This document shows, one piece after another, positions 2,959 to 25,778 of a DNA stretch of 64,000 nt. The notes under the pieces were generated by a model. It did no database searches and was not told where the DNA came from. It saw only the letters and a list, made by a program, of their open reading frames with translations. Location of the stretch: sequence record NC_062581.1. The stretch is one strand, 5' to 3'. Every line of letters begins with the position of its first letter. The stretch's first letter is position 1. Both the position numbers and the translations under genes were made by a program.

Positions 2959-3240
2959 CTACTTCTTAATATTAGCTATATCTTTCTCAACTTTAGCAAG
3001 ATCAGCTTTAAATTTCTTTAAAGCTTTAGTATCATCATCTTCATCACTGAGATACCATGATTCGCAAATAGTGTCGTAAATCTTTTCTTTAGCGCTGTCG
3101 CCATTGGTAGCCGCATTTAATATCTCCATGCGGCTAATCATTGGTTCAACTTCTTTTGGAAAAGCAATAGCTAATGTACGTACACGAGTTGACTGACAAC
3201 CCGCTTTATGAATACGTTGATCAAGGGTTAACGCTTTCCC
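2959..3240 (-). CDS. open frame probably reached by -1 frameshift from the upstream head-protein gene (or a 60-aa ORF from ATG 3141)
   Basis: Frame is open from before GGGAAAG (3240-3234) to the stop at 2959, with no ATG/GTG/TTG in the 33 codons before 3141. Confidence 0.55.
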   Translation of the reverse strand, partial: GKALTLDQRIHKAGCQSTRVRTLAIAFPKEVEPMISRMEILNAATNGDSAKEKIYDTICESWYLSDEDDDTKALKKFKADLAKVEKDIANIKK

Positions 3241-4844
3241 GAATAGGCTTCCGTACTAACGTCGTCTTCTTCATCCAGTGCATCTACTTCCGGATCAGTC
3301 TCCTCTACAAGAGGACCTTCACCGGTAGCGGCATCACCGATTGCTTCTTCTGCTTCACCAACTGTAGGCTCTTCTAGAGCTGCTGGTGGTGCATCAACTA
3401 CTTCAGGCTTGAACCGGTCGACTTGGATCTGACTGGCTGCCCAGATAGCGTACAGAGAGAACAGAGCCTGGGTAGATAGTTCACGGCGCGATGCATCAGG
3501 GTAATCTTTACCAGCCTTATCCATCAGAACCATGTAATCCCAATAAGTAGACTCAGGGAAGTAAATACGGCAGATCAATTGACCGAAGGCAACGTATTCA
3601 TTTTCCAGATGTTCTGGGCGCACTGCACGAATAGCATCAACTACTTTATCACGCAGACCATCTACTTGCAGTTCAGCCAAAGTACCTTGTTCTGCTTGCG
3701 ACAAGAATGCTTCAATAATGTCTTTTCGACGGGAGCGTTCAGCATTATCCATAGCTGCTTGTTGAATCAGCGGATAAACGTTTTGGAACTTCTGAATGAA
3801 ATAAGCTTTACGTTCTTCCAAACGATCCAAAGTTTGTGGGCCACTTTCTTCCAGAGCAGAACCAAGTACTACAGACAGATCACCTTTAGCAGCACGCCAC
3901 TGTGGTTCAACGTCACCGTTCAACCAAACTACTAACCGACGGTTTTCGATTGCATTGGCTGCATCAGAACGCAGAATCAATACGCCTTTAGTTTGGTCTT
4001 CAGCGCGTCGTTGATAAGCACGTAGCAGGTATGCACCCAACATCTCGTGGAGCAAACGTAGTACGTGAATCCACTCTTCATAAGTAACCGATTCACTAAT
4101 AGCATCAACTGGGTTCTCACCTAGGTGACCACACAGGAAATAAGCTAACAGCAAAGCATCAATGTTGAAAGGTGTATTAGTGCCTACAACAAAATCCAGT
4201 TCACCTACAGTAACAGCTTTGTTGCGGTTGAACAAGTCAGCGTACGTACGGCTAATAACTTCTGGATCTACACTGAGTAGCCATTCTGTAATTTGTTCAC
4301 GTTCAGCATGTGGGTTGTTGATAGAGACCATTTCGATGATCTGTTCAACACCTTGACCTGGGAGAATAAAAGTACGGTAGCTAGCAGCAGGAGTTACGTT
4401 TGCATAGTTCTGCAAATGAGAAGTCAAACGTGGTTCACTGTGCAGTGGATCGTATTTAAAGATGTCCGCCCGAATATCTGCAGAGGTAGAAATCTTTTGG
4501 CGTTCGTTAAAGTCACGAACCATTGAATCAATACCTGGGACAACAACGTTAGATACGTTGAATTGAATTTTACCCAGTGCAGCAGCTACTAGACCAACCA
4601 TGTCTTTATTGTCTTCTTCGACAGTAATAGGTTGTTCTTCATTCATTTCGGTGAAGTGATCTTCAACCGATGTTACGAGTTCTTCAGATACAGGTGCGCC
4701 GGTAGGGGCTTCATCTACAGCGTAGCCGCTAGCGAACTGAGCAATAGGAAACTCAGGATTCGGCACGACCAGAACTTGACTACCTTCAGTCAGTTGCTGT
4801 GCAATCAGTTTTACCGACTGCACGGTGTTGGCGATATCAGACAT
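3228..4844 (-). CDS. virion head protein (phiKZ gp177 / SPN3US gp243-like)
   Basis: 538 aa, acidic tail with an AALE candidate cleavage site; synteny between the protease/beta'C genes and RNAP beta. Confidence 0.65.
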   Translation of the reverse strand: MSDIANTVQSVKLIAQQLTEGSQVLVVPNPEFPIAQFASGYAVDEAPTGAPVSEELVTSVEDHFTEMNEEQPITVEEDNKDMVGLVAAALGKIQFNVSNVVVPGIDSMVRDFNERQKISTSADIRADIFKYDPLHSEPRLTSHLQNYANVTPAASYRTFILPGQGVEQIIEMVSINNPHAEREQITEWLLSVDPEVISRTYADLFNRNKAVTVGELDFVVGTNTPFNIDALLLAYFLCGHLGENPVDAISESVTYEEWIHVLRLLHEMLGAYLLRAYQRRAEDQTKGVLILRSDAANAIENRRLVVWLNGDVEPQWRAAKGDLSVVLGSALEESGPQTLDRLEERKAYFIQKFQNVYPLIQQAAMDNAERSRRKDIIEAFLSQAEQGTLAELQVDGLRDKVVDAIRAVRPEHLENEYVAFGQLICRIYFPESTYWDYMVLMDKAGKDYPDASRRELSTQALFSLYAIWAASQIQVDRFKPEVVDAPPAALEEPTVGEAEEAIGDAATGEGPLVEETDPEVDALDEEDDVSTEAYSGKR

Positions 4845-4855
4845 GATGTTTCCTT

Positions 4856-5053
4856 TTAGATTGCAAGTTGGGTAGCGATACGACCAGCCAGAGCTTCCTG
4901 GATGTCTTGCTTGGTTAGGAATACCCCGTTCAAAGTAGAGGAGGTATGTTCGGTGCCGAGGATGCGCAGAATTGCTTCTGCGCCCAGTTCGACAGCGGAA
5001 GACAGAATCGAAAGATTCTGCCCGTGTGCGACGTTGTTACTTAGATTTTGCAT
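4856..5053 (-). CDS. small hypothetical protein overlapping the RNAP beta stop
   Basis: 65 aa from ATG 5053 (MQNLSNN); fills the gap in a tightly packed operon. Confidence 0.55.
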   Translation of the reverse strand: MQNLSNNVAHGQNLSILSSAVELGAEAILRILGTEHTSSTLNGVFLTKQDIQEALAGRIATQLAI

Positions 5054-8000
5054 TTGCGGTTCCTCTGTAGACACCTACCAGGTGCTTTGACAATTCGGCA
5101 AGAAGGATAGTTGTGGTGCCGATCAGTTTGGGGCTCAGTACCATCCGCTCTTCTACGGATGTGTTACCGAAGATCAAGTCAATATCCAATCCAGATTTAG
5201 TCTGGTTAACGCCACGCATTACACGAGAGAATACAGTCTTCATCTGGTTAGCAACTACACCTTTATCACCTACACCGCAAGGGATGTCATGGTCGATATA
5301 AATGTTGATTACCAAAGACTGTGGCTCTAGACCATTACCACGGATGCGGTATTCATGATCTACTTCACCACTGAAGAATTCTTGACCACGTGCTTTAGCT
5401 TCTGCTTCACGAACTTTGTCGGATGCATAAGCAACTTTGCGTAGACTATCAGACATCTCATCACGATCACCGTGATAGAAACATTCGATTTTGGATACAG
5501 TACCAACGACCTTCGCACGAGGGGAATAGTTAGAGAGTTTCGCAAGTGTTTCACGCGATACTTCATCAAACACCGAGCCACCGCCCGAGTCGGGATCTTT
5601 AATCGTACATAGAATTGAATCTAAGTCGACGTGATCACCAACTTTTACTATGTCTTCGATGTTTTGCTCAAAACTAACACTGACCGATTTGATCTTAGTT
5701 GTTTGAGTATTCATCTTAATAGCACAGCTTTCGGAAATGACCGAGCCATCTTCTAAGGTGTCTAAGTTATCACTAAAAGCAACAACCGTGTTGATACCAG
5801 CTTTCCAAATTACTTGCCCTGGGGACATGCGATCTGGAGTAAAGTACTTCTCGTTGTACGCTAAAGTTTGACCACGTTTAAACGTATCACCCGCTTTCAA
5901 GTCGGAGATGATTGAATGGGGGTAATGGGTACCTGCCGCAGATCCGTGGATCTTACCCATTTGGTACGATGTAGTTTCACCATTAGCATACTCGACAGTA
6001 ATCCCGTGCTCATCAACGGCAATGACCTTACCGTCGTCTTCCGCCGCAGAAGCAAAGATGCTGCTAGTCCGCTGAGCAACGATCTGCTCGTAGCCAGTCC
6101 TGAGTGGAGTAGGTTCATATCCATCCGCATAAATCCCTTGTTGCTGCTGAATACTAATGAAGTTAATACGCTTGGTGTCATCGTTAGTTGTAGCAACACC
6201 TAACAGCGCACATGTAGAGAGTTGACGAGCTGGCCCATCTGTAGTTGGATCAAATGGACGAGTTGTACCACGCATTGAATTGAAGTTAGCATCCGGAGTC
6301 AGGTAAGCAATAACACCTACATCACCCGAGTCAACCGTAGATTCAGATACGACACCTACGTCAGCTTCACCATAGATCCGAGTACGTGCAACCATGGACG
6401 TTGTAGAACGACCACCATCACCACGATACGTCATGGACTCTTGTTCACGAATGTTAGCCAGTGGGTTAGAGTCTTCAACAACCATGATGGTTGGATCTTG
6501 GGTACACTTCTTCCAGATAACCGCAGGGTCCATTTGTACTTGAACAGCAGCAGAACCAGTAGCATTGTTAAAACGCTTAACAGCTTTGTTCAGTTCGTTG
6601 TATACCGTACCTGCCATCCGCTCATAGCCACGATAGCGCATGTATGCACCATCGACCTCAGCAGGAGACCAATCGATCAACAGCATGTCTACAGCTCGAT
6701 ACAGCAGGGCATCAAATGTAGTTGGCTCACCCATCTGTTTCAACAGACCTTCGGTGATAGGGTCCATCCACGCAGCAAACAACGCATCGATCTCTTTAGT
6801 GAATCGCGCAGTCATTCCTGTTTCCAGCAACAACCGTTGATACACGTCGGGCTTATCAAAGTCATAGATCGAGAAATGCGGCATTAGCTTAGCGTACTTA
6901 CGCATGCCACCCATGATGAGTTGTGTACGGTAATCAGAACGATCAAATACCAATACGTCATCTTGGAAAGCCAACACGTAATTGTCAGATGTCAGAGGAA
7001 TACGCTCACCGCGATGGTGACGGGTATATTTAGCATTCAAACGTTTTAGCGTTGCGGTTAAGCCGTACTTGTAACCAAACACAAAAGCCAGAGGCAGGTC
7101 TTTAGAACCTACGTTCATGAAAGCACCTTCCAGTGGTGCCTTAGTTTGATCCAGACCCAACAGTTCAACAATAGAACCCAACGGTTCTAAGCTACCTTTG
7201 TCGTGTACATAGAACTGACCTTTACGATCAATCATGACTGGTAACTTACCGTTCATTACACCAACTAGGGTATACTCTTTGGTTTCGTATTGCGTGGCAT
7301 CAACTTTAAACTTAGCTTTGAAGTATTCAACGTGATCGTCAAACTTAAAGTAAAGAAAAACGTTGTCAGCAGTAAAGCCTCGGAAAGCAGAACCCAGCTG
7401 TGTATAAACACGAGGCAGCGCATAAGCCGATTGGTCTAGCTCAGCATACAACACCGCAGTAATACGGTTGTCTTCTGGATCAAGTGCTCGCTCACGAATC
7501 TGGCGAGTAATCCAAGCGTCGTAGTTATGCGCAGCCAAATGGGAACGGGTCACAAACGTCTTGTTGTAATAAGAAGTCAGTGCTACGGTATCGGGTTTAA
7601 CTTTACGGATAGGCAAGTCAGCCCGTTGCATACGCATCCGGTAAGTAACACCGTTGGATACAAACCGTCCATCCCGATCAACTACTGGTACACGGAAATA
7701 AATTGTACCAGGCTTACCACGAATCGGTTTCAAAGTAACCTTGTGAATTTCGTAGTGGTTCATTGCATTACGCACTTCTTCCACTTCGTAGTTTGTTACC
7801 GCTGTGCCTTGCTTCTGTACCGACAGTACCGCATTGATCATGTCCTTATTACGGAGATGTGTCTGATACTTACGTTGCATTGCTTTAAGCTTAGAACCCA
7901 ACATGGACTTGTCAAGGACTGTGGCCGAATCAGCAAGTTGCGTGTCAGCAGGAAGTTCGTAATCTTCCTGTGTAAATTGCATTGCTTCTTCTAGCGTCTT

Positions 8001-9515
8001 ACCTGTACCAAAAGGATCTTTGATTCGAGTGTACGACTCAGCATCAGTAATGGCTTGTTCAAATGTACGTGGTTGGATAATACCCAGCTTATAAAGTTCA
8101 TAAGCGGGACCAGCAACACCTGCAACTATCGGCGCGGCTTCAGCCACGTTATCAGGGATGGCATCAACACGTTGAGCTTCGACCTTAATTTCCCGTGGCC
8201 GATGAACCAATTCAGCATCACTCTCAATTTGGAGTTTGGTAGTGAATAGTTCTGCATCCGGCGGGTTATAAGTTGCTCCATTTTCGGTGAAGTCGAGACT
8301 AGGGATTGTAAAGGCTGGGATATCGAAGGCGGTTTCTTCTTCGACGTGAACTGGTTCGACTTCCTCATTCTTGTCCGGAAGTGTTCCGTTGTCTTCTTCC
8401 TCGCCCGATTCCAACTCATTAACAGGTTCCTCTTCAACATCAACCAAATTAGTGTGGTCGATTACATTAGACAATGCTTCAGCTTGGTGATTGTATTCTG
8501 TCATTGCTGCCAGAAGAGACAACACGCGGCGTTGCATTACGGCTGGAGGAAAGAATGCCTCCATACCAAACGTGTGAACAAACGATTCAACTGCAACGTT
8601 AGTGGTCAAACCAAGTTCTTGCATGGTGCCATGAATCTTATTAAAGGCAAATTGTTCCTCTTCTTTAATATCTTCATAGCCCAAATCAAAAACTTGTGTA
8701 CCAAAGATGTTAATGAATTCTTCTACTGTAACAGTAGCTTCAAGATCTTTAGTACCGTCACGCCATTCATCCAGTGCACCCATGTTTAGAACAATAAACC
8801 GATCACGTGCACGAATCAAGAACCAGATCTTAGAATACATATCTGGTTGCACAACCGACATCATCGATTGCTCGCGCATTGGCCCTAACCAACGATACAG
8901 ATCCCAAATGGAAAACTGTTGTGGTGTGGCAAACGTTTCTAAGTTGGTTTGGTTCTGATTATCAGCCATCCGTTTAAAAGAAGCCAGATCAGGCATTTGT
9001 TCCGGTAGATGGATTTCAACAAACTGCTCCCAACCAAACCGGCGGTGAGAAGCAGCAACGTTTTGCCAGAACGTACGCTGGTTGTTAGACCAACGTAAGA
9101 AACCGGCTTTAAAGTTAGGTTGATAGATCCACTGTGGGTCTAGCAGGTTATAGTTGAACACCATGACATTGAGAGGGTTGATTGCCAACGCTTCATCTTT
9201 AGTCAGTGGTTTGAAGAATGCATTCTGTTGACGGAATTCAGCTTGTAGCTTAGACGCTGTCAATGCAGACTTACGTGGGTTACCTTCAGTTGATGCCAAG
9301 CTTGTTACGTGCTCGATATAAACTTTACCTGTCACCTTGTTGAACAGTGGGTCCGTTTGAGACGGACCTCGTACTGCACCGTTAGGATCAGAGAAGTGTA
9401 CAATCGAACGTTGTGGCAGGAACAACTTGTTTAACAGATGCAGTTTGGGTTGTTGTAGTTTGCCTTGTTCGAAAACGGTATATTGTTTCCGAAACTGTTC
9501 AATGGCTAAGCGCAT
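5037..9515 (-). CDS. rpoB: virion RNA polymerase beta subunit (phiKZ gp178-like)
   Basis: 1492 aa; beta motifs ESTVDSGDVG, QQQQG, RTGYE, LEDGSVIS, GVGDKGVVANQMK, DLIF. Confidence 0.9.
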   Translation of the reverse strand: MRLAIEQFRKQYTVFEQGKLQQPKLHLLNKLFLPQRSIVHFSDPNGAVRGPSQTDPLFNKVTGKVYIEHVTSLASTEGNPRKSALTASKLQAEFRQQNAFFKPLTKDEALAINPLNVMVFNYNLLDPQWIYQPNFKAGFLRWSNNQRTFWQNVAASHRRFGWEQFVEIHLPEQMPDLASFKRMADNQNQTNLETFATPQQFSIWDLYRWLGPMREQSMMSVVQPDMYSKIWFLIRARDRFIVLNMGALDEWRDGTKDLEATVTVEEFINIFGTQVFDLGYEDIKEEEQFAFNKIHGTMQELGLTTNVAVESFVHTFGMEAFFPPAVMQRRVLSLLAAMTEYNHQAEALSNVIDHTNLVDVEEEPVNELESGEEEDNGTLPDKNEEVEPVHVEEETAFDIPAFTIPSLDFTENGATYNPPDAELFTTKLQIESDAELVHRPREIKVEAQRVDAIPDNVAEAAPIVAGVAGPAYELYKLGIIQPRTFEQAITDAESYTRIKDPFGTGKTLEEAMQFTQEDYELPADTQLADSATVLDKSMLGSKLKAMQRKYQTHLRNKDMINAVLSVQKQGTAVTNYEVEEVRNAMNHYEIHKVTLKPIRGKPGTIYFRVPVVDRDGRFVSNGVTYRMRMQRADLPIRKVKPDTVALTSYYNKTFVTRSHLAAHNYDAWITRQIRERALDPEDNRITAVLYAELDQSAYALPRVYTQLGSAFRGFTADNVFLYFKFDDHVEYFKAKFKVDATQYETKEYTLVGVMNGKLPVMIDRKGQFYVHDKGSLEPLGSIVELLGLDQTKAPLEGAFMNVGSKDLPLAFVFGYKYGLTATLKRLNAKYTRHHRGERIPLTSDNYVLAFQDDVLVFDRSDYRTQLIMGGMRKYAKLMPHFSIYDFDKPDVYQRLLLETGMTARFTKEIDALFAAWMDPITEGLLKQMGEPTTFDALLYRAVDMLLIDWSPAEVDGAYMRYRGYERMAGTVYNELNKAVKRFNNATGSAAVQVQMDPAVIWKKCTQDPTIMVVEDSNPLANIREQESMTYRGDGGRSTTSMVARTRIYGEADVGVVSESTVDSGDVGVIAYLTPDANFNSMRGTTRPFDPTTDGPARQLSTCALLGVATTNDDTKRINFISIQQQQGIYADGYEPTPLRTGYEQIVAQRTSSIFASAAEDDGKVIAVDEHGITVEYANGETTSYQMGKIHGSAAGTHYPHSIISDLKAGDTFKRGQTLAYNEKYFTPDRMSPGQVIWKAGINTVVAFSDNLDTLEDGSVISESCAIKMNTQTTKIKSVSVSFEQNIEDIVKVGDHVDLDSILCTIKDPDSGGGSVFDEVSRETLAKLSNYSPRAKVVGTVSKIECFYHGDRDEMSDSLRKVAYASDKVREAEAKARGQEFFSGEVDHEYRIRGNGLEPQSLVINIYIDHDIPCGVGDKGVVANQMKTVFSRVMRGVNQTKSGLDIDLIFGNTSVEERMVLSPKLIGTTTILLAELSKHLVGVYRGTANAKSK

Positions 9516-24455: not shown

Positions 24456-25532
24456 ATGACTCAAGATGTTCAATTCGTTGCTCCGTTTATTGTTCTGGAA
24501 GGTGACGAAGGTACCGGTAAAGGGACTGTTGCTCTGGAAGTAGTTGCAAAGCTGACTGCTAAAGGTATTCCATTTGTTCACACACGTGAACCAGGTGGTA
24601 CCGAAATGGGTGAAGTGCTGCGTCAACAACTGTTGATGAAACGTGAAGCCAAATTGGAACACGTTACACAGATCTTGCTGCATCAAGCTTATCGTAAAGA
24701 ACACGTTGAGAAAGTAATCAGTCCTGCTTTGCAAGCTGGTGTAGTTGTCCTGAGTGAGCGATTCTTCATGTCGACTCTGGCACTAAACATCATGCCTTAC
24801 TTGGACCCTACAGATCCACAGAGCGAAGGCAATCAGCTGTATCAACTTTTCATGGACACCATGCCTCACGTTGCATCGGGTGTTATTGAACCTATTACTT
24901 TCCTGCTAAACATTGACGACGAAGAAGTTCGTAAACAACGTTTGGTGGGTCGTGAACTTGATGCTTATGAATCCCGTTCCCCAGAAGAACTGGAAGGTAC
25001 TACTCAAGCGTACAAGATGTTCCAAAAGCATCCGACCACTATTACTCTGGACGCCACTCAGTCACCAAGTGATTTGGCTGACCGTATTGTTTCCCAGATT
25101 GAAGAACAAATCAAACTGGCTAAAGATCAAGCTCTGGAGTTTGCTGAGCAAGAAAGCAAACGTGAACAAGCGGTGCAAGTTGAAGAACAAGGGGTTAAAC
25201 TCCCAGAAGAACTTACGGCACTGGATGATGGTGTTAAAGCACCAGTAGTTGAAGAGAAGCCATTTGATCTGCAAGGTTCTGTAGAAGAATTCCTGGCTGA
25301 AAACCTGGTACCTGCTCTGTTCAACCACGATGCTGAACAAGTAGAAAAGTATCTGCCAACTGCACGATCTTATGTATTGTCTGTTTACAACCAGATTCAA
25401 GATCCAGGTTTGTTCTTGGGTCAGAACCGTGCTCAGCTGCGTACTAACATGCACAGCATTTTCCACTACGGTCACCAAATGGATCTGTTGCGTGAACGCA
25501 TTGCAACCACTCCCGCTGCTGAAACAGTATAA
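24456..25532 (+). CDS. tmk: thymidylate (dTMP) kinase with C-terminal extension
   Basis: FIVLEGDEGTGKGT P-loop, TREPGGT, ERFFMST; ATG 24456 after GAGG. Confidence 0.9.
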   Translation: MTQDVQFVAPFIVLEGDEGTGKGTVALEVVAKLTAKGIPFVHTREPGGTEMGEVLRQQLLMKREAKLEHVTQILLHQAYRKEHVEKVISPALQAGVVVLSERFFMSTLALNIMPYLDPTDPQSEGNQLYQLFMDTMPHVASGVIEPITFLLNIDDEEVRKQRLVGRELDAYESRSPEELEGTTQAYKMFQKHPTTITLDATQSPSDLADRIVSQIEEQIKLAKDQALEFAEQESKREQAVQVEEQGVKLPEELTALDDGVKAPVVEEKPFDLQGSVEEFLAENLVPALFNHDAEQVEKYLPTARSYVLSVYNQIQDPGLFLGQNRAQLRTNMHSIFHYGHQMDLLRERIATTPAAETV

Positions 25533-25544
25533 CAAGGAACACAA

Positions 25545-25778
25545 ATGCAAGTGAGTAATAAACCTTCATCTACCCCAGTCAGTGAATTGGGTGAACTAGA
25601 CGATTACATTGGTCGAAGTTTCTTGATCAAACGAAATAATCAAGTCACGTGTGTTAAACTTGAAAAGGTTAAACGCCGTGTTGTGTACTTAACTCATCCA
25701 GGTCGTGATGATGGGTTTACTGTACCAATTGAAAAGTTTCGGGAATATTACCACTTGCTTCCTAGCAGTAAGGTTTAA
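25545..25778 (+). CDS. hypothetical protein
   Basis: 77 aa, AAGGA SD. Confidence 0.6.
   Translation: MQVSNKPSSTPVSELGELDDYIGRSFLIKRNNQVTCVKLEKVKRRVVYLTHPGRDDGFTVPIEKFREYYHLLPSSKV

Follow-up and report, generated by a model that had tools for sequence, protein, structure and literature searches.

Known recoding systems and the gp242 gene of phage Psa21

Annotated frameshifts in bacteriophages are found almost exclusively in tail chaperone genes (PMC10885494). In phage lambda, the slippery heptamer of the G/GT genes has the letters GGGAAAG (PMC3296357, Table 1), and G_GGA_AAG is described as highly shift-prone in E. coli (PMC5009743). Here we describe the same heptamer at the 3' end of gene gp242 of Pseudomonas phage Psa21, which encodes a homologue of the phiKZ head protein gp177. 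The gene is located in a stretch of 64,000 nucleotides (nt) of sequence record NC_062581.1, subsequently designated the window, to which all Psa21 positions refer. Comparison with related phages indicates that gp242 is very probably decoded in two ways through -1 frameshifting, and that the small downstream gene gp241 represents the tail end of the resulting extension rather than a separate gene. Judged from the sequences of two phage groups, there is strong support for -1 frameshifting of the canonical type in a gene family new to it, the extensions being unusually modular.

With lambda G/GT, gp242 shares the heptamer letters, as a preliminary description of the locus had already pointed out, as well as the position of the putative -1 shift near the 3' end of the upstream open reading frame (ORF) and the predicted synthesis, from a single mRNA, of a short product and one with a C-terminal extension. 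It differs in that the proteins are not homologous, the locus is a head locus and the carrier is a putatively packaged head protein and not an assembly chaperone. In gene 10A/10B of phages T7 and T3, which encodes a virion protein, a -1 shift shortly before the end likewise yields a minor longer form (PMC5009743). However, the first triplet of the T7 site is non-canonical and its stimulator lies at a distance (PMC5009743), and in T7 a short tail is added to the major capsid protein, whereas in Psa21 an internal head protein would gain a whole folded domain, with modules that vary among relatives. Listeria phage PSA also makes recoded, C-terminally extended structural proteins (cited in PMC5009743), but here the shift is in the +1 direction and concerns other genes and sites. 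As a concept only, Gag-Pol fusions are comparable, in which frameshifting loads cargo into the capsid at a fixed low ratio and a capsid protease releases it. These belong to eukaryotic viruses and show no homology; for gp242, packaging and release are suggested by the carrier family, an S-x-E motif and an adjacent protease gene. The phiKZ gp177 gene itself encodes a homologous body at the same locus, but has neither a terminal heptamer nor a -1 extension. A description of a gp177-family frameshift was not found in the journals searched, an earlier mention elsewhere being possible; a 2026 review on jumbo phages nowhere mentions frameshifting (PMC13282480), and an interaction-proteomics paper on PhiPA3 contains no data on these ORFs.

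Psa21 is a 305-kb phiKZ-like jumbo phage (Tepukevirus) with Pseudomonas syringae pv. actinidiae as host. The gp242 coding sequence (3228-4844, - strand) specifies 538 amino acids in the zero frame and is annotated as hypothetical. Its product is composed of a conserved body extending to approximately residue 480, followed by an acidic tail. The only PHROG match is to PHROG 3841 (E = 3.9e-101), i.e. the gp177 family of head proteins, to which no function is assigned. The body is homologous to phiKZ gp177 (44% identity, E = 3e-128 by tblastn to PHIKZ177), a head protein reported to contact the inner body, to undergo cleavage by the prohead protease and to enter the host by injection (PMC10449902). 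A relative of known structure was not found for the gp177 body, and the gp242 locus yielded no match to a tail assembly chaperone family in Pfam or PHROGs and no Pfam match at all. The gene is positioned between a virion RNA polymerase (vRNAP) subunit gene and the head protease gene, not between tail tube and tape measure genes, confirming the earlier statement that the context is not that of a tail chaperone. As a small correction to the preliminary description, RefSeq numbers the gene as gp242 and the ORF downstream of it as gp241.

The slippery site and its conservation

The gp242 gene ends with TCG GGA AAG CGT TAA. The heptamer G GGA AAG (3240-3234, - strand) is thus present in X XXY YYZ register. 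Behind it come CGT (3233-3231) as a single sense codon and TAA (3230-3228) as the stop of the zero frame. Upstream, the -1 frame is closed by a TAG (3258-3256, - strand) located five codons ahead of the GGG triplet, which makes initiation further upstream in this frame impossible. From the heptamer onward, the frame is free of stops for 91 codons, from GCG (3234-3232) to the TAG at 2961-2959 (extension at 3234-2959, - strand), and continues 90 codons past the zero-frame stop. The earliest ATG, GTG or TTG in this frame, the ATG at 3141, coincides with the annotated start of the 60-amino-acid ORF gp241 (2959-3141, - strand). The latter corresponds to the 3' two-thirds of the extension. The positions of heptamer, upstream stop and first start codon given in the preliminary description all proved correct.

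Most ribosomes would read TCG GGA AAG CGT and stop at TAA, producing the 538-residue head protein. A fraction would slip back by one base through tandem slippage: the tRNAs on GGA (P site) and AAG (A site) would shift their pairing to GGG and AAA, respectively. These ribosomes would continue from GCG and translate the 91 codons, resulting in a long form of 627 residues (536 + 91) that carries a complete domain, designated domain B, behind the acidic tail. The earlier proposal of a short and a long product made by a -1 shift is supported by the comparative evidence presented below, while its size estimate of about 628 residues for the long form is off by one. That slippage takes place at the gp242 heptamer is likewise suggested by comparison with relatives.

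The combination of an in-register heptamer within the last ten codons and a long -1 frame is unique to gp242 among the 48 ORFs of at least 150 amino acids in the window. To estimate how often such a site arises by chance, we counted in-register heptamers within the coding sequences of 21 family members and found 14 in 12,022 codons. From this internal rate, the chance of an in-register heptamer in the last three codon positions is about 0.35%. GGA is rare in the five Psa21-type genes, accounting for 5 of 147 glycine codons, i.e. one per gene; therefore, the sole GGA of each gene is the one in the heptamer. On the coding strand between the gp242 and gp241 ORFs, a promoter-like or terminator-like site was not found.

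The Psa21-type set comprises Psa21 and four uncultivated relatives (L011, L012, L013 and L025), each derived from a separate metagenome assembly and 79-83% identical to gp242 at the protein level. All four retain the identical heptamer in the arrangement TCG GGA AAG, one further codon, TAA, and their -1 frames comprise 95-98 codons, so that both the heptamer and the downstream frame are conserved in homologues. The first ATG of the open -1 frame is found at codon 36 in L011, 39 in L012, 21 in L013 and 39 in L025, and the codon corresponding to the Psa21 ATG at 3141 is TTG in L011 and L013. This shows that no start is conserved. Nevertheless, the amino acid sequence of the -1 frame is conserved from its first codon on. 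For the start-less 31 codons between the heptamer and ATG 3141, the ratio of non-synonymous to synonymous substitution rates (dN/dS; calculated for Psa21, L011, L012 and L013) is 0.24 in the -1 frame as compared to 0.63 and 2.4 in the other two frames. The impression that these codons resemble coding sequence is thereby borne out, and the coding signature is confined to the -1 frame. Purifying selection extends over the whole extension (dN/dS 0.18-0.24). Synonymous divergence is 0.32 in the start-less stretch versus 0.61 in the rest of the extension, and this reduction to about half suggests an additional constraint at the nucleotide level. Neither heptamer nor extension is present in D6 and RVTF4 (78% and 70% protein identity to gp242, respectively), several uncultivated relatives, PS119XW, phiKZ and Noxifer. 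In most of the relatives lacking the extension, the gene for the structural protein begins about 10-70 nt further on, compared with 147 nt in phiKZ.

A second group with the same layout is formed by eight lineages, namely Viktualia, PhiPA3, Phabio, 201phi2-1 and the uncultivated L020, L021, L024 and L029. The 3' ends of their gp177 homologues carry an in-register C CCT TTA or C CCT TTG, separated from TAA by one codon, which is the geometry seen in Psa21. The -1 frame opens 1-8 codons ahead of the heptamer and runs for 116-411 codons. Its predicted product, designated domain A, is conserved from the junction onward, and the first 26 codons exhibit a dN/dS of 0.33 in the -1 frame versus about 1.5 in the others. 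Hence, in both groups the -1 frame is under purifying selection from the junction on (0.24 and 0.33 versus 0.6-2.4 elsewhere). A conserved TTG considered as a common start in this sister clade had to be discarded: it is present in five members, but replaced by CTA in L021 and L024 and by TTT in L029. There is no start codon common to all members, and the earliest possible start follows only 81 codons after the shift in L021 and 60 codons in L024. CCT represents 45% of the proline codons, TTR 26% of the leucine codons and NNC 24% of the threonine and alanine codons, yet these codon choices never vary at the site, although synonymous positions in its surroundings have diverged heavily. Published data on the behaviour of C CCU UUR were not found; the pattern and its conservation suggest that it slips like G GGA AAG.

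The domain A ORFs following the gp177 homologue are located at 4252-4602 of L005 (PhiPA3), 3001-3369 of L009 (201phi2-1), 3001-3378 of L008 (Phabio) and 3582-3929 of L003 (Viktualia). The annotated starts of 201phi2-1 gp270 and Phabio gp260 are ATG codons inside the -1 frame, and the PhiPA3 record has an annotation gap of 313 nt over the -1 ORF. The extensions consist of domain A alone or combined with an insert matching PHROG 17560 (E = 1e-24), a GNAT acetyltransferase-like end (L024; weak and below the Pfam thresholds) or domain B (L021). The PHROG 17560 module, which displays a DG[FY]HRV-like motif, was observed within extensions (L021 5459-6580, L024 5516-6748 and L029 5372-6061). A ParB-like nature of this insert, which we had considered, was not confirmed, as there is no Pfam match and only a weak match to PcrA (E = 0.009).

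Across the 21 family members, each of the 13 genes followed by a -1 frame of at least 95 codons has the in-register heptamer, always equally far from the stop, as opposed to none of the other eight (Fisher's exact test, p = 5e-6, uncorrected for phylogeny). By type, the heptamer is carried by 5/5 Psa21-type genes and 8/8 genes of the C CCT TTR type, and by 0/14 relatives that lack an out-of-frame extension. Site and extension are both missing from five distant homologues, found in Xanthomonas, Erwinia, Ralstonia and Burkholderia phages and in Noxifer. The gene that follows in RSL2 lies in the -1 frame yet possesses its own start. At all 13 loci, one of two unrelated heptamers is followed by exactly one variable sense codon and by TAA as the only stop used. 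In our view, the weight of the argument lies in the conservation of the site against a diverged background.

Possible stimulatory structures were also considered. In the Psa21 type, a conserved bipartite hairpin of 14 pairs (3217-3178, - strand), which starts 16 nt 3' of the heptamer, is a candidate stimulator. One of its A-U pairs is replaced by G-C in a compensatory manner and one G-C pair by G-U, the remaining substitutions residing in loops; its energy z-score is only -1.7 and the spacing is atypical. In the sister clade, a small and nearly invariant hairpin is located 7 nt after the heptamer. Members of this clade additionally have a GC-rich hairpin of 13 pairs about 50 nt after C CCT TTR (L003 3642-3672; alignment A3, columns 64-94), which is embedded in a conserved coding stretch (RRL.RL.ERRGE) and in which several pairs are changed on both sides.

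Several observations argue against frameshifting at gp242. No stimulatory structure was found at the usual spacing of 5-9 nt in the Psa21 type. The positive genes form just two clades, which implies few independent events, so that the association test overstates independence. The absence of the segment from D6 and RVTF4 indicates that the extension is dispensable. Finally, according to notes in the GenBank record of 201phi2-1, gp271 was detected in virions by mass spectrometry, whereas no detection is recorded for gp270, the annotated portion of the -1 extension of gp271. Accordingly, the extension may be rare, removed or absent from virions.

Domain B and alternative readings of the extension

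Domain B comprises 91 residues with five helices and two invariant cysteines. The AlphaFold2 model predicts a compact five-helix fold (mean predicted local distance difference test score, pLDDT, 90.4; predicted template modelling score, pTM, 0.78), in which the first two helices and the beginning of helix 3 derive from sequence upstream of ATG 3141. In an alignment with distant homologues, 6 of the 18 invariant positions (Q6, A11, C13, S15, P26 and E28) are also located upstream of the annotated ATG, C13 being one of the two invariant cysteines. These conserved residues and helices indicate that the 60-residue gp241 is a truncated reading of a 91-residue domain. Domain B has no match in Pfam or PHROGs, and structural searches of the Protein Data Bank (PDB) and BFVD revealed no neighbour except the annotated 60-residue protein itself. 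A PADLOC match of 14 bits was judged meaningless.

Homologues of domain B occur in different genetic settings. A free-standing protein of 89 residues with 56% identity (P0004; L031 30-299) is preceded by a strong Shine-Dalgarno sequence and starts with an ATG at precisely the position of the first Psa21 -1 codon; its gene resides in an unrelated context adjoining a resolvase. In Viktualia, domain B is encoded by an ORF of 107 amino acids with its own ATG (E = 4e-12; L003 3929-4252), and this ATG overlaps the stop of the -1 extension (ATGA). In L021, domain B forms the C-terminal part of a -1 ORF of 374 codons following the gp177 homologue. A 228-residue ORF of PhiPA3 considered as a further homologue was not supported. 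The route to domain B thus appears to differ, being coupling in Viktualia, in-frame fusion in L021 and L037 and, as proposed here, frameshifting in Psa21. It was also observed as the C-terminal domain of unrelated proteins without Pfam match (P0010, P0022 and P0023, each of about 500 amino acids, and P0019); a Pfam family was not found in the other proteins carrying domain B. Domain B behaves as a mobile module.

P0025, encoded on the uncultivated L037, was retrieved by searching 1.8 billion representatives with a profile. It is a gp177-family protein of 695 amino acids (PHROG 3841, E = 9.4e-102) that is 37% identical to gp242 over residues 5-493. It carries domain B in frame, residues 606-686 corresponding to residues 4-84 of the Psa21 -1 frame (40% identity, E = 1e-18). 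The surrounding genes are arranged as in Psa21, i.e. a small ORF, the gp177 homologue, a gp176-like gene and a Peptidase_S80 protease. At the place of the heptamer, P0025 has Gly-Lys encoded by the non-slippery GGT AAG. Carrier family, domain B and synteny are hence shared with Psa21, whereas the single ORF without heptamer is different. This shows that fusion of the body with domain B is natural and that the heptamer is present only where a change of frame is needed. Since the ORF is uninterrupted, every copy of P0025 carries domain B, rather than a fraction as predicted for Psa21.

These data allow an assessment of the annotation of gp241 as an independent gene, according to which translation begins at ATG 3141, the preceding 86 nt are non-coding and the heptamer is coincidental. 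RefSeq and gene callers annotate the ORF in this way, and a weak purine-rich stretch precedes the ATG. However, this ATG is replaced by TTG in L011 and L013, whose first ATG is elsewhere, and the supposedly non-coding stretch bears the coding signature of the -1 frame and encodes a third of the invariant residues. Moreover, the confidently predicted fold requires the helices encoded upstream, and the full-length homologues either begin at the position of the junction or are fused in frame. An independent start at ATG 3141 is thereby rejected as the main route, and we regard the annotation as very unlikely to be right. Internal initiation at this codon could accompany frameshifting.

Another possibility is that domain B is produced alone from a non-standard start following termination of gp242, for instance by reinitiation at the ATT at 3213-3211, and is never fused to the body. 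The close overlap of the stop with the start-less frame is reminiscent of coupled genes, and the Viktualia ORF with its own ATG provides a precedent. But L013 has ATC in place of this ATT, the corresponding codon of the free-standing homologue is CTT, and the invariant Gln6 as well as conserved residues before it are encoded upstream. Reinitiation would also leave unexplained why the heptamer with its rare GGA codon is invariant, why the sister clade shares the layout and why the in-frame fusion lacks the heptamer. We therefore give this scenario as little credence as the annotated gene.

Even less probable is a change at the RNA level, in which polymerase slippage on the GGG or AAA run would leave some of the transcripts with an extra base. 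The same two products would result, and these phages use RNA polymerases of their own. However, the runs comprise only three bases, whereas known cases require much longer ones (reviewed in PMC5009743), and the conserved feature is the two-triplet X XXY YYZ register rather than one long run, the sister clade having CCC TTT. Finally, it is hardly credible that the frame break is non-biological, arising through erroneous sequencing or assembly, a recent mutation that inactivated the gene or decay of an inserted gene: short G and A runs are prone to indels and the segment is dispensable in D6 and RVTF4, but Psa21 was sequenced by Illumina MiSeq at about 600x coverage (PMC6544186) and five independent assemblies have the same frame arrangement, on which grounds sequencing error is rejected and assembly error excluded for practical purposes, and decay is at odds with purifying selection over the whole extension.

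Possible packaging of the extension and neighbouring genes

The prohead protease of phiKZ has the reported consensus S/A/G-X-E (PMC10449902). An S-x-E motif is found at a fixed place beside the junction in 13/13 sequences. In 5/5 Psa21-type sequences it is encoded in the zero frame; in Psa21 it corresponds to Ser-Thr-Glu, residues 529-531 (3260-3252, - strand). The glutamate is positioned five residues before the last zero-frame residue decoded prior to the predicted shift. In the sister clade, the motif is encoded in the -1 frame with the glutamate at residue 8. The distance from the glutamate to the first invariant cysteine of domain B is 17 residues in the Psa21 type (5 + 12), 17 in the Viktualia ORF B and 15 in L021, and the free-standing homologue outside jumbo phages has no S-x-E leader.

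Taken together, a carrier family whose phiKZ member is reported to be packaged and injected, the S-x-E motif and a protease gene located two genes downstream suggest packaging and release of the extension. The extension would ride into the prohead on the gp177-type body and would then be cut free by the prohead protease at S-x-E. As a minority product, the long form would set a low and fixed copy number of a co-packaged and possibly injected cargo. However, S-x-E is a short motif of low information content, and release by the protease is thus put forward as a hypothesis. In a broader, tentative scenario, which we deem conceivable but rather doubtful, the 3' end of gp177-family genes, with its heptamer, single codon and TAA, serves as a fixed docking joint, to which interchangeable cargo modules are attached by a -1 shift to be packaged in a set minority of copies, freed by the protease at the neighbouring S-x-E and ejected together with the DNA as early-acting effectors. 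This joint would be used by Pseudomonas nucleus-forming jumbo phages, with domain A, the PHROG 17560 insert, the GNAT-like domain and domain B as modules. If true, it would represent a Gag-Pol-like packaging logic in a bacteriophage. The reported injection of phiKZ gp177 and the presence of enzyme-like modules in the extensions make the latter candidates for co-injected early effectors, of which very few examples are known (PMC13282480).

The gp177-type site adds a well-supported case outside of tail genes to the recoding catalogue, and the presence of two heptamers in one fixed layout offers a useful natural comparison for the evolution of frameshift sites. If the proposed decoding is true, a hidden form of a head protein exists in a much-studied phage group that includes the nucleus-forming models 201phi2-1 and PhiPA3. 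Current annotations contain a small orphan ORF or nothing at these sites, and proteomic searches and knock-down designs based on them would miss or misassign the extension.

The gene order at the Psa21 locus is gp244, gp243, gp242, gp241, gp240 and gp239, all on the - strand, which agrees with the synteny of the gp177 family, i.e. vRNAP subunit, small ORF, gp177, gp176 and prohead protease. gp244 (5037-9515) encodes the beta-type vRNAP subunit homologous to phiKZ gp178, and its 3' end is overlapped by 17 nt by gp243 (4856-5053), an ORF of 65 amino acids corresponding to PHIKZ177.1 in phiKZ. An ORF of similar size is present at the same position in every related locus examined. Downstream of gp241, gp240 (2229-2942) encodes a virion structural protein homologous to phiKZ gp176 (PHROG 2926), and gp239 (1387-2217) the head maturation protease homologous to phiKZ gp175. 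Elsewhere in the window, a single further long ORF (25062-25550, - strand) has an in-register heptamer (GGGAAAC) within its final ten codons; its -1 frame extends only 7 codons past the stop, and nothing suggests recoding there.

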